From the NCBI GenBank assembly GCA_965112155.1, contig OZ218114.1: a stretch of DNA of 64,000 nucleotides; one strand, written 5' to 3'. Each line of letters starts with the position of its first letter. Positions within the stretch are counted from its first letter, which is position 1. Source of the stretch: Podarcis liolepis. Lineage: Eukaryota. This document shows, piece by piece, positions 8,760-61,311 of the stretch. The notes beneath the pieces were generated by a model. The model saw nothing but the letters and a program-made list of their open reading frames with translations. It searched no databases and was not told where the DNA came from. The position numbers were made by a program, and so were the translations under genes.

Positions 8760-9960
8760 AACGCCCCCTTGGTTGGAAGAAGAATGGGGCGCCCGCGTTC
8801 ACACGTTATCCTCACCCAACACGCGTGTTGTTCAGGGGGAAAAATCCCCTCCCCCTTCTCAACGGTGCCAGAGAAAGGTGAGGGTGGGGGGCTCGCCATG
8901 CCCACCTCCCTTCTCTCTCACCCCCCCCCCCCGCCAAGACCGCGCTCCCCTTTTCCTCTCAGGCGCCTCTCCCCACCTCGCTCCGCGTGATGCGGTGCCG
9001 GCCCAGCTTGACCACGGCGAAGTTGCCCTTGCCCAGGGTGCCCTCGATCTCGTAGAAGCCGACGCGGACGGGGCCCGACCCTCCGCGGGGCGGCTGCAAG
9101 AGCAGCGCCGCGGCAGCAGGGGGAAGCCGCCGGGGCTCGGCCATCACCATGCTGCCCGGGCGGCTCCCCGCTCCTCCTCGCCGCCACCACCTCCTCCTCC
9201 TGCCGCCGGGGCTGCTTCCCCGCTCCTTCCCCTCCGCCTCTCCCTCTCGCTCTTTCCCTCACGAAGGACTGAGCAGCCGCCACTGAAGCCCGGCGCCCTC
9301 CCAGCCACCGCCGCCGCCGCGCTCGGCTCCTCCCCCTTGGCTCCTCCCAGGCTCCGCGCGTCACGGCGCGCGTCATCGGAGAGGGTGGGGGCGCGCGTCG
9401 CCGCGGCAACCGGAGCCAACCGCGGGCGAATGTTCCAACGGCCATCTCCTCTCCCACCCGCCATCGCTCTCTATCCTCCCGCCGCGCGCGCGCGCCACTT
9501 CCCAGTTCAGGGGGCCGTTCCCGCCAATGGGAGGGGGAGGGGGAAAATCCCCATCAACCCCCGCGCGATACTTGAGGGGCTTTCCTGCCACCTCCACCCC
9601 TTTTTGCATTCCCGTTTGTGGGGCTGCGCGAGGTGTTATCGCCTCTCTCAAACTGTGCTTTAGCACCGGGCACCCCTCGCTGTGCCATAAGCATCAGGAG
9701 AAGCGGCTCTGGCTTTAAAAATGGGGGGGGGGGCAGGCGCTCTTTTTTTGACATTGATAACCTCCCCAGTTGCTTATCGAGTCGTCCTGCGAGGGACCGT
9801 TTTTCTTCGCCAGCCACGTCATTTTACCACACGTTCACAGAATGCGCGGTTTGCCTCGCGTTTTACCTCACGTTCTGTGGCTGCGCGCATTTTGCACCTG
9901 ATGCGTGTGGTCACCATCTCCCTCGCCGCTTGGCACAATGGGAGGGCAAATTTTGTGACG
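8760..9960. promoter_or_regulatory. SIK2 CpG-island promoter/5'UTR
   Basis: CpG-dense block over exon 1; two half-CRE CGTCA (9359-9363, 9371-9375), X-box-like GTCGCCGCGGCAAC (9397-9410), CCAAT near 9523. Confidence 0.8.
8977..9150 (-). CDS. SIK2: Salt-inducible kinase 2, coding exon 1 (58 codons; remaining exons not found in this window)
   Basis: MVMAEP...[33 protein letters not shown] matches the SIK2 N-terminus and kinase Gly-loop; phase-0 donor GAG|GTGGGG; lies downstream of LAYN as in human. Confidence 0.95.
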
Positions 9961-16439: not shown

Positions 16440-17394
16440 GCCTGTTTACATTGCAATGTAGAAATTTCCTGTGATAGGAGAAACTAACCTTGGTATCCCC
16501 AGTGCCATAACTTGCAAATAAAGAAATGCTAGTGAGATTGATTAACTTTTTAAAAATAGCAATAAAAATTGAAATGCATCTAACTACTTAATGAAAAAGG
16601 TACCTTTAGCACAGCAATTGGGAAACCAAGCAAGAGGCATCACTCAACTACCGGTAACTACCACTTCCTTGGTGCAACCTGGCAACTGTTGCCTAGCACT
16701 GTTTTGACTGTTGCTCATGGGCAGCAATCTTGGGCATTATTGTTGCCTTTGCTTTTAAGCAACACATGGCTGATTCACACATGCATGCTCATCCCTTGCT
16801 CATCAAGACGCGACTTGCATGTGGGACTGTATCATCACAGATCAAACACAATGCACTTAAGTAGAGGAATTTCACACATTCAGCAATGTGTGCTGACTAA
16901 TTCAATGGTGGTCAGGAGGACTCAGCCCACTGAAGTAGATGTGCACACATGTTTAGTAACCCTGGCCATCTTAATAGCATGGAGTTATAGTCCAGCAAAC
17001 AGTTCACCAGCAAAACATGTGTATTCCTTGATAAACAACATACAAGGTTGCATTCAGACATGCACAAGAGAAACTTGACAGCAGTGCAATAATACCCATG
17101 TCCAGGATAACGGGAAAAGTAACTGAAAATACAATGAAGGTTTGTGGCTGTTTGTACACTAAGGTTTGTAAACTAAAAGTTACTAGAGTTTTGTCAGTCA
17201 TCAAATTTGAAAGGTGCCCAAGGCTATCTTGATACCAATTCCAGGATCCTACTACCCTACATTCCAACTGGAATCATCTGGAGAGGGAATTTCCCTTATA
17301 GGGGATTCTCATTCATATGTGGGTTAACGCAGTGTTTCCCAACCGGTGTTCCGCGGCACACTAGTGCCGCGAGACGTTGCCTGGTGTGCCGTGG

Positions 17395-18067
17395 GAGGGA
17401 GGCGGGCGAGTCGGGCGGCGAGAGGCGGGGCGGCGGCGGCATCTCCTGCTGGATGCAAATCCAAACATGGCGGGCGCCTCCCTCGCTCCTTTGTAGGCGG
17501 ACCATCGAGAGAGAAAGAAAAGGAGGCGAAAGAGCGAGAGAAGGCGCCTGCGCGGAAAGAGGAGCGAGCAGTGCGTCTGCGCGCCGCGGCGCCCGAGTGC
17601 AGTGAAATTCCGTGAAGAGGGGAGGGGGGGCTGGAAAAGAGAGAAAAGAAAGATTTTTCATTTTTTTTAAAAAAAAAAGGAAGAGGGAAAGAAGAGAAAA
17701 AGCGGCAGAAGCTGAGGGGAAGGTTTCCGTGAGGGAGAGAGAGAGAGAAACACGGGGCTGGCGGGACCCCTCCTCTTCCGCCACGCGTCGCCCGCCACCG
17801 CCTCAGAATCTCCTCAGGAGCGGCGGCGGCTGCTCCCCCTCGCCCCCTTCCTCCCCCCCAGCCCCCTCCCAACCCCCGGACGAGGGACGCGAGGCGGCGC
17901 CGCTGAGAGGACGGGAAGGCCCCCGGCGGCGGGGTCGGCTCGAGCAAGGAGGGGCGAGCGCTAGCCGGCTGGCTCTAGCCCGGCAAGTGGAGGAGGAGGA
18001 GGAGGAGCACGCCGTCGCTTCCACAGCGGCCGCCCCACACTCCCCTCCCCGGGCACCGGCGGGGAGA
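17395..18067 (+). promoter_or_regulatory. Captured CpG island/5'UTR, inferred to come from UBE2G1
   Basis: CpG-rich sequence running directly into the UBE2G1 ATG; YY1-type AACATGGCG (~17464-17472) and NRF1-type GCGCCTGCGC (17544-17553) motifs. Confidence 0.7.
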
Positions 18068-18113
18068 ATGACGGAGCTCCAGTCCGCGCTGCTACTGCGG
18101 AGACAGCTGGCAG
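18068..18113 (+). pseudogene. UBE2G1: Orphan copy of UBE2G1 coding exon 1 (46 nt) with its splice donor
   Basis: Encodes MTELQSALLLRRQLA+G, the conserved UBE2G1 N-terminus, followed by GTCGGT; no further UBE2G1 exons found in the window. Confidence 0.88.
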
Positions 18114-18425
18114 GTCGGTCTGTCCGTCGGTCGGGGCAAAACACACCACAGCGCAGGCAGAGGCAGGCAGGCCCGTCTCTCCCTGCCCCCCCTCGGACCT
18201 GGCCGGCCTGGGGTTTGCACCCCAAACATTCATGTCCACCCCAGCTACACAAGCCCACACCTTGCTCTCAGTTCGATCTGTCAAATAACTCACCTATCAT
18301 TCACATAAAGAACCTAGTCTATCCTCAAACGTCAGAATGCACCTCCTCTCTAGCTTCCCCCACTTCATCTAGGCACTTTCAGCCCTTACTTAACCCACCC
18401 CAGCCTGCTTACTCTTCCTTCATTT

Positions 18426-18551
18426 GCTATAAAAACTAAATACAGAGAGAGACTGAGAGCTGTTGATGAAGAGCTACGTGTGTGTCTTTCTTCGATTCCA
18501 GCCAGAATATCAGCTTTGTGTTCAGCCAAACAGGCCCAGGTTGCGCACTGA
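18426..18551 (+). pseudogene. C-terminal remnant of hAT (Charlie/Buster-like) transposase
   Basis: [41 protein letters not shown] fits the K-T-K-Y-R-x-R-L...LRV.LS...Q...H* end of Charlie/Buster transposases; stop overlaps AATAAA (18551-18556). Confidence 0.85.
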
Positions 18552-21500
18552 ATAAAGTATTTTATAATTTTTCATATTTCTGTTTACTTACTATTTCATA
18601 ATAAAGTAATTATAAAATACTTTCTTTGTGTTTATTTGATTCCTATTAAAGAGAGTTACTTTATATATATATACTTTAAACATTTTCTAATGGTGGTGTG
18701 CCTCAAGATTTTTTTCATGAAACAAGTGTGCCTTTGCCCAAAAAAGGTTGGGAAACACTGGGTTAACGGATTGTCCGTATTCAATCGCTCCTTTTCTATC
18801 CATTAAGTGCAGGAAGCAACTTCTCTGTTTGAGCCATTCACATAACATGGTTGCCAGTTCTCACGTGTCTGAAAATCACGCAGTGAGAATTGCTGTCATC
18901 AGATTCCATTACAGCTATTTGTGCTGAATTGCACATATAGGAAAAAATATGCTCTGAACACCCTGCATGTCACACAAAGTAATACACTCTGGTAAGGAGT
19001 ATAAACACCCATTTCCTTATGCCCTGACCACAAGGTTCCAAGTGGCCTAGCCTGCTTTCTAGTTACTCAAGCAAGACCTCATGTCTTTTTGGCTAATCTT
19101 TGCCTCAGAGTCAAATTTGATGTTACTTTTTCCCTGTGGTTAGCATCCACATCATTTTTAGGTTAAAAAAAATACTTGGCACAAACCCCTTTTTCTTACA
19201 ACTGGATATGAATGTGGGAAGTGAGGTTTAACCCTTCCACGGAATCCCCCCAAATCCCTGTGTGCTAGATTAGAAGAAGAAAAAGCTCTGTTGGTCTCTG
19301 CTTTTCAGCCCCTTCTCTCTGCCCTTTCTTTCCTCCACCCCTTGTGTTCTCTGCCTCTTGAAGAGAAGAGTCCCATCAAAACTGATCTTTATTTTCACCA
19401 TAAAAGTTGGTCTGTTTGTGGGGATTCTATTGTCTTCAGTGCCATTCCTTCCAAGTTAGAATGTTCACAGACATTCCATGACATCACAGCAACTCAGCCA
19501 CCCACAGCCAGAGGCTTCAGACATCCACATGCATACAACCCAACACCACCACAAATATCACCTTACAATATAATTTAAAAAAATTGTGGCCTCATATGGT
19601 AACACTGTTCCACTCAGTACACGATAACAGACTGCTGCTATTACTAAGTATCTTTTCTGTCACATGTCAAATAACAAAACAAAACAAAACAATTTTTCCC
19701 CGGTCTTATTCCAATTCACAGCTTCTTCCTTGGAGCAGAAAACCGGAGGAGTTGTAGCATTCAGGTTAAAAACTGCAGGCCTCAACTAAACATGTCAACA
19801 AATAATGCATTGATTGTTTGGTTTGGACATTTCCAGGAATTACAGCATGGAATTCAATAAGACTACTTTTGACACCACTGTACAAACATAGCCCCAGTCA
19901 CTTTGTTACTTTTTCCAGTGTGGGTCTCTCATCACTTGAGGCAGAAACTCACTGAAACATGGAGGAAAGGATCTCAGGGAACTTTATTACATTTCCTGAA
20001 ACCGACATCTTCTTCAGTCCCTCATTTAGTATTGTGCTTCCAAAAACAGATATCAGGCCCTTTTTTGACACTGGAGGAAGTCTTGTCAGTCCTGGCTCAT
20101 TTAGAGGTCAAAGTTTAAAAATTCCACTTAAGGATCAATGGTTAAAAAAAAAATCAAAATCAAAGTATAATGTATTCGATATCCGATGGCAAAGGAGGAA
20201 TTTCATTTGTTTCCCTCTGTCTTAGGACTGATGGTAGAAAATCAGGATTAGATGCTGCTTCCAGAAGACTGTTGCTCATGAAGATTTGCTTTCAGTTATT
20301 TCCATCACTTGTGTTTGTCCTGTTGCTAGACTTTAAAATCTTTTCAAAATTGTACTGTAAAACACGAAAGGAACAAGAAATAGTAATAAGAAAAAGAGGC
20401 GAAAGGCATGCAGAGACTTACTTTCCATCTTCACTGTTCAGGAAATCACATTCCGCACACACAAAAATTGCATTTGGAAGCTCTTGTCAAGTTCACGTTA
20501 CGCTTACATTGCAATTGTGCATTCAACAAATTTATAAATATGTAACAGATAAACAAGACTTGTAAATAGCCACACACCGGTCTATTGATTTCTATGCAAA
20601 AGTATATAAATGGGATAAGCATCCTCCCATGGATATGAATGGGTTCAAAATTGTGCCTTGGCCAAATCATGTTGCTTTCATGGATAGGTGAGCTAGCAAT
20701 TTTTTGTGTACTTTGGTACTTTTTGTGGACATTCACAAGGCTGGGAAGAATATAAGAGTTAATGCTATCAGGCTCAAACCGTACATGACATTAATCACCC
20801 ATGTAGCAGAGAAAGTGGGCACAGCAGTTCTTCTGTCTCTTCCATTATACTAGAACACAGGGTCATCTAATTATTAAACTGATTAGCTGTCAGTTCAGGA
20901 CTGAAAAGAGAAAGTGCTGCTTTGCATAATACATAATTGCTAACTTCACTAGATTTGCTGCCATAATATCTAGTGATGTCCACTGAGTTAGACTTTTTTT
21001 AAAAAGGGCCTTTAAACGGGATTAATCAAATTCATCAAAGAGGTCTAAAAATGCCCATTACTGAAGTTGGCTATATGGAATTAATGTTCAGAGGCACTAT
21101 CACATTTTACCTTAAGTCCTATTTCAAGTCTTCAAGCGGAAGAGTCTGCACTGATGTAGCCAAATGGCATAATCCAAGCACAAAGTTTGGGGGAGTCCTG
21201 AGATTTGCAGCAGCATGAACAACAACAACAACCCTAATGTTGGGGAGGGGACATTCCATATTAGTTTGAAGTGGATACAAGTATGTTTGCTCCTTAGAGG
21301 AAAATAGCAGCTGCTGGGGTGGGCAAATTTGGATTAAGAAAATAGTGGCAGGGGAAGGGTTAAGTCTTCATCTCCCAGTGCCACCACCCTGATCTGAATC
21401 CCTCCCCCTTCCTAAAAAAGCAACAACACAAAACCATTAGGATATCCAACCACAGATCTCCAGGTGTCACTACTAGCCTCTCAAAAGTGCACTGATGCAT

Positions 21501-34625: not shown

Positions 34626-34761
34626 NNNNNNNNNNNNNNNNNNNNNNNNNNNNNNNNNNNNNNNNNNNNNNNNNNNNNNNNNNNNNNNNNNNNNNNNNNN
34701 NNNNNNNNNNNNNNNNNNNNNNNNNNNNNNNNNNNNNNNNNNNNNNNNNNNNNNNNNNNNN
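34626..34761. other. Assembly gap (N run)
   Basis: Run of N. Confidence 0.99.
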
Positions 34762-55467: not shown

Positions 55468-55732
55468 TAAAAGGTAAAGTTAAAGGGACCCCTGACCATT
55501 AGGTCCAGTTGTGACCAACTCTGGGGTTGCGGCGTTCATTTCACTTTATTGGCCGAGGGAGCCGGCATACAGCTTCCGGCTCATGTGGCCAGCATGACTA
55601 AGCCACTTCTGGTGAACCAGAGCAACATACGGAAACGCCGTTTACCTTCCTGGCGGAGCGGTACCTATTTATCTACTTGCACTTTGACGTGCTTTCAAAC
55701 TGCTAGGTGGGCAGGAGCAGGGACCCTTGGGG
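55468..55732 (-). mobile_element. Sauria SINE, partial
   Basis: Reverse complement of the 28695/40380 copies. Confidence 0.8.
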
Positions 55733-55749
55733 ATTTGAACCGTGGACCC

Positions 55750-56490
55750 ATTCCGTGGGCTAACCCACAGCGCCACCCGCGTCCCTGTACAGTACACACA
55801 ACAAAACAGGCCCAGGGCTGAGGATGCGCACGCAGGCCACGCCCCTTTTTCCCAGGGGAGAAAGGACATGCACTCTGCACGTGCCCCGGGGCACCCTGAC
55901 TTTCCCCTCGCTCGCAGCCAGCGGGGAGGAGGAAGCCCTGCCAGGGGAAAAGAAGGGGGGGCGAGGGGAGGGAAGCCAAGGGAACCAGGGGCGCTGCTTC
56001 TTCTCCCTCCTCACTGTTGTCGGGGGTGCGGGGGATTTGCAGGCTGGTACCGCTCGCCCGGGAGCTCTTCCTGGAGCTGGAGCCGCTGGCCGAGTCCCTT
56101 CGCGGCCCCAGGCGGGACTCGAGCGGCGGCTGGAGGGTGACGGAGTTCCAGAAGGACTTGGCCAGCGTCACGTCCTGCTCGCAGGAGCCCGTGAAGGCCA
56201 GGAAGGCGGGAGAAGGCGGCGTCGGAGAAGCCATGGCGGCCGCGGCTGCCGTCGTCGGAGGGGCCTCAGGCCTCGCCGTCTCCGGCGTCTCCGGCCTCGG
56301 CGTTTCCATGGCTCCCGGAGGAGGAGGAGGCCTCGCGCTCTCCTTCCCGCCCTTGCGCTCCGGCGGCTCACCTGCCTCCTGCTGGCAACCGTCGCTCTGG
56401 GCCTCCCTCTGCCCCGGATGAAGGGGGATTCGGAGTAGAGGCAGAAAGCGGGGTGGCCGAGGAAAGGTGGCGCGGCCTGGGCCTCGGGAT
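55750..56490. promoter_or_regulatory. HOATZ CpG island
   Basis: CpG-rich block over exon 1. Confidence 0.7.
56015..56309 (-). CDS. HOATZ: HOATZ (C11orf88) coding exon 1
   Basis: METP...FLAFTGSCEQDVTLAKSFWNSVTLQPPLESRL matches the HOATZ motif (human LVFAGSSEQDANLAKQFW); gccATGG context; donor ACA|GTGAGG at 56015, in-phase alternative at 56051. Confidence 0.88.
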
Positions 56491-56654
56491 ATTACTATGT
56501 GTCTCCTATTCGTTTCATAACGTTCATTTCTTTTATATATATCATAATTTGTATTAGTTTTCCATTGCAATCCAGTAATAGTCTCATTATAACAACGCCA
56601 AATTATAATACAATTACCAATACCAGTCATTCATATACCAAATTATAATATAAG

Positions 56655-60814: not shown

Positions 60815-61311
60815 TGTAAGGCAGCCTTTGCCAACCTGGTGCCGGTGTGCTGGCTGGGGCTGCCGGGGGTTGCAGTCCAGGAGGGCACCGGGTTGGCAAA
60901 GGCTGTGAAAGGCTAGGTCCCTCAGACTAGGATGCCAGGGCCTTGCTTCCTACACCATTTAGGCAGAAGGAGCGTCCAGAGGTGACCCCTGAGCAGCGTT
61001 ACGAAACTTCACCCACTGACTCCATCACTACCCAGTCAGGTGACCCAGAAAACCAATGTAGCTCCACCATGCTCTATAAATGGCATGTCCCATATGCTCT
61101 TCCTTCCTGTAGAGAATTATTTGGCAGGTTCCGCTTCCTCAGGCACACGGCTGCTTTGGGAACCTTGCCTTTTTTGCCTGCCTTAGACTGGCACTTGGCC
61201 TCTGTCTGCTTCTCTCTCCCACTTCACCCCTGGTGCTTTGCTTCTTCCTGATCCCAGGGCTCTGATCCTTCCACCCCACCCCATTCAACCCTGGCCAAAT
61301 TCTGCTGTGAC
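60815..61311. mobile_element. Possible solo LTR with a small hAT MITE (~60822-60905) near its left end
   Basis: TGT...ACA ends with GGATT/GGATC flanks; inner TIR CAGCCTTTGCCAACC. Confidence 0.5.

Follow-up and report, generated by a model that had tools for sequence, protein, structure and literature searches.

A Probable Young Pack-hAT Insertion Carrying UBE2G1 Exon 1 and CpG-Island DNA in Podarcis liolepis

Structure of the Element

A 1431-bp element lies at 17330–18760 in the 64,000-nt stretch of Podarcis liolepis contig OZ218114.1 that was analysed here (the window, in whose coordinates all positions are given). It combines the ends of a hAT DNA transposon with 983 bp of host-type DNA, in which the first coding exon of the ubiquitin-conjugating enzyme gene UBE2G1 is recognisable, while its transposase gene is reduced to 41 codons. 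Terminal inverted repeats (TIRs) around host sequence characterise a Pack-TIR, and we consider it very probable that the element is a recently inserted Pack-hAT, a non-autonomous member of the Buster/Charlie branch with a gene fragment as its cargo.

The two TIRs are perfect. The left copy, CAGTGTTTCCCAACC at 17330–17344 (+), pairs over 15 of 15 nt with its exact reverse complement at 18746–18760 (−), and the TIRs begin with CAG. Both are directly abutted by the 8-bp target-site duplication (TSD) GGTTAACG, which is identical at 17322–17329 and 18761–18768. When the window sequence was scanned for the exact 15-mer, these two copies were the only matches, and no internal TIR copy or second end was found inside the element. 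By our own arithmetic, a 15-nt inverted pair within 3 kb that is also flanked by an identical 8-mer is expected by chance about 3e-6 times per window. The initial annotation had proposed an element of this length with perfect TIRs and an identical TSD, and both are present in the sequence. The motif GTGTGCC occurs at 17355 (−), 17384 (+), 18696 and 18726, which amounts to four occurrences within ~60 bp of both ends against 12 in the 64 kb. These subterminal motifs may plausibly be transposase-binding repeats.

The region 16822–19268 was compared with the contigs of three DNA runs from related organisms (X1, X2 and X6) and with raw RNA reads (X23). Unitig ends place the internal breakpoints between 17440 and 17441 and between 18423 and 18424. 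The hAT left end is 111 bp long (17330–17440, +) rather than the ~65 bp first supposed, since this is the segment common to an abundant non-autonomous family. The summed contig depth of the element ends alone is roughly 10^4 times single copy, on the left up to ~17440; on the right, contig depth increases in two steps, at 18424 and nearer the end. The hAT right part measures 337 bp (18424–18760, +) and comprises the transposase tail, the 3′ untranslated region (UTR), the subterminal region and the TIR. Between the two lies a cargo of 983 bp (17441–18423, +), which contig depth and unitig ends mark as specific to the Pack family and which replaces almost the whole transposase gene. Both junctions are crossed by contigs from other organisms: an X1 contig (record 2) spans 17413–17579 over the left breakpoint, and X2 contigs (records 13 and 14) overlap at 18424–18453 over the right one, where depth rises from 260 to 637. 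Most other members of the end-family match the element only as far as 17440 on the left and from 18675 or 18688 on the right; beyond these points their sequence is different and also GC-rich, and one such continuation contains TGACGTCA. This suggests that the end-family holds other CpG-rich interiors or cargoes.

The cargo had been described as ~820 bp of CpG-rich DNA followed by ~200 bp of separate filler. The CpG-rich part is borne out, whereas the supposed filler has the copy number of the rest of the cargo and is indistinguishable from it. A near-palindromic T-run followed by an A-run lies at 17650–17687, in the middle of the CpG island, and interrupts both reads and contigs. The two sides of this tract have the same copy number, and the family cargo is therefore unbroken.

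The tail of the transposase occupies 18426–18551 (+), with 41 codons at 18426–18548 and a stop at 18549–18551; an AATAAA polyadenylation signal (18551–18556, +) overlaps the stop codon. The 65-aa frame that ends in this tail gave 66 matches at E ≤ 1e-3 in a search of 1.84 billion representative proteins. Nearly all of them place the tail at the C-terminal end of the matched protein or a few residues from it. Identities ranged from 63 to 84%, the top two being 84% and 81%, and the 81% match is a fish UniRef entry named ‘HAT C-terminal dimerisation domain-containing protein’. One matched protein of 637 aa has DUF4371 and Dimer_Tnp_hAT domains, which we take to be the architecture of Buster/Charlie-type hAT transposases. 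Pfam assigned no family to the 41-aa tail alone, a query that is too short. The suggestion that the element retains the last 41 codons of a Charlie/Buster-like transposase thus agrees with the protein matches. The TSD, read as GGT-TA-ACG, has TA at positions 4–5 and fits the Buster-type target consensus nnnTAnnn (PMC3499496), although a single site is weak alone.

The element is accordingly a non-autonomous hAT of the Buster/Charlie branch. It resembles the Buster-family elements TcBuster, SPIN and Charlie in its 8-bp TSD with a central TA, its short CAG-initiated TIRs and the C-terminus of a transposase of the same family, and differs from them in that only the last 41 transposase codons are encoded. 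As only the cis parts are kept (the 111-bp left end, the 337-bp right part, the TIRs and the GTGTGCC motifs), the element must depend for its movement on a transposase supplied in trans from another locus; the window yielded no autonomous partner. The 20-nt terminus of the element had no exact match in viral contigs. Five JGI metagenome contigs (L001–L005) match the terminal 20–29 nt only, with neither a partner TIR nor cargo. The window also contains an 84-bp hAT-like miniature element (60822–60905) with 22-nt inverted ends (21/22 matching) that start with CAGCCTTTGCCAACC and are related to the ends of the Pack element; its flanking 8-mers differ, and it is probably old.

The Captured UBE2G1 Segment

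Within the cargo, the coding part of UBE2G1 exon 1 is 46 nt long (18068–18113, +) and runs from the ATG at 18068 through 15 codons to the first base of codon 16, with the translation MTELQSALLLRRQLA. When the exon peptide was compared with all PDB chains, UBE2G1 (6d68) was the sole match, with 15 of 15 residues identical over residues 1–15 (E 0.011), in agreement with the UBE2G1 N-terminus proposed earlier. The exon is followed by GT at 18114–18115 and by intron-like DNA that extends to 18423 (+) at the same copy number as the exon. The sequence after the exon reads GRSVRR, unlike UBE2G1 exon 2, and a short-motif scan of the window in six frames found no further UBE2G1 exons. Since the GT donor is kept and no exon 2 follows, the cargo derives from genomic DNA and not from cDNA. 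The donor, the intron-like continuation and the capture at the DNA level had all been claimed before, and all three hold.

The first 760 bp of the cargo (17441–18200, +) resemble a promoter and 5′ UTR. With a GC content of 0.657 and a CpG observed/expected ratio of 0.85, compared with 0.1–0.2 in the flanks, this part passes the composition thresholds for a CpG island (length of at least 200 bp, GC content of at least 0.5 and observed/expected of at least 0.6). The start of the cargo carries an octamer-like ATGCAAAT and the motif AAACATGGCGG, which at the level of motifs is typical of housekeeping promoters. A protein-level search with the exon region of the 275-aa open reading frame (ORF) retrieved four Logan ORFs (P0001–P0004) that read through UBE2G1 exon 1. 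Outside the exon, their resemblance to the cargo is confined to ‘AGR’ preceding the ATG and ‘G’ following the exon.

The Insertion Site and Its Neighbourhood

One single-copy contig in each of X1, X2 and X6 joins 17319 to 18759 and thereby skips 1439 nt. These empty-site contigs have depths of 59 (X1), 11.5 (X2) and 11.7 (X6) and extend at least 255 nt on each side. Relative to the window, their flanks carry 3, 8 and 13 differences per ~1008 nt, respectively (0.3–1.3%). The empty sites are exact and contain a single GGTTAACG. The empty-site comparison that had been proposed for related lizards thus found the predicted allele in three related organisms, and the recency suggested for the insertion fits an empty site whose flanks are only 0.3% diverged in the closest of them. 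An exact empty site in relatives this close is classic proof that the element arrived by transposition, and shows that the insertion is very young or polymorphic. The family was still moving after the divergence of the X1, X2 and X6 lineages. Depth in X1 is 61.5 in the bin 17232–17313, compared with 59; this may represent a filled-junction contig and was given no weight.

The surrounding genes confirm the SIK2-LAYN-HOATZ block. SIK2 exon 1 lies at 8959–9150 (−), the LAYN signal-peptide exon at ~37.3 kb (−) and a HOATZ-like exon at 55695–56627 (−; Pfam PF17664). UBE2G1 is not known to be linked to this block in other vertebrates. The element was inserted between the SIK2 promoter and the 3′ side of LAYN, ~8 kb upstream of the SIK2 start, and its cargo is antisense to both genes. 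CpG islands are present at ~9–10 kb and ~36.5–38 kb, and the window contains a run of N at 34626–34761.

Copy Number and Divergence of the Family

Cargo contigs are far deeper than the single-copy contigs of the same runs: 887–1912 versus 59 in X1 (15–32×), 222–269 versus 11.5 in X2 (19–23×) and 303–512 versus 11.7 in X6 (26–44×). In all three organisms, the cargo contigs carry 0–2 changes per 115–400 nt and are ~99% identical. We therefore estimate that the family comprises ~20–40 near-identical copies per genome, and the idea that the element is one of a family is supported by cargo at ~15–44 times single-copy depth. The window copy itself is set apart from the family majority by private changes, namely a 1-nt indel and seven substitutions, of which four are CpG-to-TpG or CpG-to-CpA changes.

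Transcription of the Family

In the X23 RNA reads, depth with the first mate on the minus strand was 12–30 in the bins covering 18134–18543, and depth with the first mate on the plus strand was 0. Past the AATAAA at 18551, sense depth dropped within one bin from ~29 to ~3, and depth was zero on the flanks of the element. If the library is a dUTP library, the family is transcribed in the sense direction only, across the cargo and as far as the AATAAA of the transposon itself. A sense-only signal, from copies that presumably lie in either orientation, would point to initiation inside the element rather than to read-through from outside.

Initiation inside the element allows for two start sites, and transcription may proceed either from the captured promoter or from the hAT 5′ end. 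If it starts at a promoter in the hAT left end, the captured UBE2G1 cargo would be a passive passenger, which we regard as a serious possibility, albeit the lesser one. Sense coverage is found from 17478, just 38 nt inside the cargo, and transcripts end at the AATAAA of the transposase gene; both would be compatible with a hAT promoter, and the left end is itself CpG-rich (GC content 0.74, CpG observed/expected 1.14 over 17330–17440). However, reads from the left end are unassignable, as ~10^4 other copies have the same end, and the octamer-like and housekeeping-type motifs described above stand at the start of the cargo.

The same RNA reads contain a second sequence type. About 65% of the X23 sense reads over 17734–18038 have in common a set of eight substitutions and three indels. 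Four of these substitutions were without a DNA contig, those at 17941 and 17946 were on low-copy contigs, and those at 18019 and 18038 occurred in several contigs. Across the coding exon, the sense reads equal the window sequence, and their depth, 33 at 18088, is down to 10 at 18113. The variant reads are a candidate for spliced native UBE2G1 mRNA, ~97% like the cargo, from which such a fall at 18113 would be expected.

Another set of exon-like contigs, ~88% identical to the window over 18011–18143, is present at single-copy depth in X1, X2 and X6. These were considered as the real UBE2G1 gene and rejected, because they differ at codons 2, 3 and 7 and have T as the last base of the exon; they diverge from the window after 18132. 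In X23, reads from this paralogue were found in the opposite orientation only. The contigs are taken as an old, decayed copy of exon 1 and not as a functional gene.

Origin of the Chimera

We propose that the chimera formed once, when gap repair or stalled-fork replication of a hAT copy would have switched template to the 5′ region of UBE2G1. Replication-fork switching, termed FoSTeST, has been proposed for multicopy Pack-TIRs (PMC8277862). The switch possibly took place at GGC repeats: a GGC run ends at the left junction and further such runs are found within the cargo, which would suit a microhomology-mediated event. TcBuster favours transcription start sites and CpG islands (PMC3499496), and such a preference of Buster elements would place donor hAT copies near templates of this kind. 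An open, unmethylated CpG island may then have aided the spread of the family, one copy of which was inserted by cut-and-paste transposition into GGTTAACG.

Several points weigh against this interpretation. The homology between the cargo and UBE2G1 is established for the 46-nt exon only and is unproven beyond it, as are the parental breakpoints and any microhomology. Filled junctions were not found in the X1, X2 and X6 DNA runs, so the insertion is documented by the assembly alone. The copy numbers are depth ratios of single contigs, and summed k-mer depths are not copy numbers; the other copies are known by contig depth, their distinct TSDs not having been seen directly. The strandedness of the RNA library was inferred, with the standard dUTP protocol assumed. 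The site is empty in X6, which is the DNA run of the X23 organism, so the expression is that of the family and not of the window copy.

A different route to the same structure would be aberrant or composite transposition, or end bypass: two hAT copies, or one copy with a cryptic end, would have lain on either side of UBE2G1 exon 1 and moved as a unit, without any template switching. Two flanking copies are plausible given ends that are repeated ~10^4-fold and the Buster-type preference for start sites. Yet the element contains no internal TIRs or second ends, and 111 bp on the left and 337 bp on the right of a transposase-bearing element around foreign DNA is the layout of an internal replacement. 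Replication-fork switching was also favoured for multicopy Pack-TIRs by Tan et al. 2021 (PMC8277862), and we consider composite transposition unlikely.

Still less probable is an origin of the cargo from the UBE2G1 gene of another species, with the finished Pack element reaching lizards by horizontal transfer. Elements of the hAT/Buster type are prone to such transfer, and the only single-copy contigs seen to match the exon are ~88% identical. Those contigs, however, represent decayed copies rather than the functional gene. The low-copy expressed variant is ~97% like the cargo, has an identical exon and shows the loss of depth at 18113 that would be expected of a spliced native mRNA; we therefore regard a foreign source as very unlikely. 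Finally, a repeat misplaced by the assembler in the SIK2-LAYN spacer would agree with the empty site being the only allele in the X1, X2 and X6 DNA runs, but it is hardly credible, since a misjoin would not yield an exact 8-bp duplication at perfect TIRs with a single 8-mer in the empty allele, and the internal junctions are supported by multicopy contigs in other organisms.

Comparison with Known Pack Elements

Gene-fragment capture by hAT elements in animals is not new. In 100 animal genomes, Tan et al. 2021 counted 370 Pack-TIRs, including 208 hAT elements (PMC8277862). Most animal Pack-TIRs were single-copy and arose by transposition-independent events; multicopy cases numbered four, of which three came from frog and one from alligator, and one example had three copies (PMC8277862). 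The words ‘lizard’ and ‘anole’ are absent from the main text of that study. Capture is not mentioned in the work of Novick et al. 2010 on Anolis DNA transposons, and a literature search found no other animal studies of Pack-TIR or Pack-hAT elements.

The closest comparison is Pack-hAT-N8_XT of Xenopus tropicalis, which is likewise a transcribed, non-autonomous hAT with TIRs and TSDs and a 5′ fragment of a host gene inside; its cargo is 291 bp of the CAPSL 5′ UTR, and it spread by transposition to unlinked sites (PMC8277862). The present family differs from it in three respects. It has an estimated 20–40 copies that are ~99% identical; its cargo consists of a CpG island, a coding first exon, a donor and intron-like DNA; and the insertion described here is absent from the closest relatives, which indicates very recent activity. 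While Pack-hATs are already known in animals, the copy number, the recency and the cargo of promoter, coding first exon and donor are unusual here.

Plant Pack-MULEs also favour GC-rich 5′ gene ends. Like the lizard family, the Pack-MULE and Pack-TYPE elements of rice, maize and Arabidopsis are TIR transposons that amplify genomic, intron-containing gene fragments (PMC8903248). The plant elements are Mutator transposons with a 9–11-bp TSD, whereas the present one is a hAT with an 8-bp TSD in a vertebrate host, and a single gene fragment is recognised in its cargo.

Significance

In plants, gene-fragment capture by cut-and-paste transposons drives exon shuffling. The present element points to a transposition-dependent route operating at scale in an amniote, in the form of a transcribed and recently mobile family with a housekeeping promoter, a start codon and a splice donor. 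We tentatively suggest, as a proposition that falls a little short of an even chance, that one still-active Buster-type lineage in this lizard group repeatedly captures the CpG-island promoter, first exon and intron start of many genes and amplifies each to tens of copies. If this is true, the UBE2G1 family would be one of several, and the lineage would be a vertebrate counterpart of the rice Pack-MULEs that scatters housekeeping promoters and splice donors.

Any new insertion can place a CpG-island promoter, together with a 5′ exon donor, in the vicinity of host genes, and the window copy lies ~8 kb upstream of SIK2. The family thereby opens three matters to testing: the way such chimeras arise, whether a transposon that carries a CpG island is thus shielded from silencing, and how often the copies give rise to chimeric transcripts.

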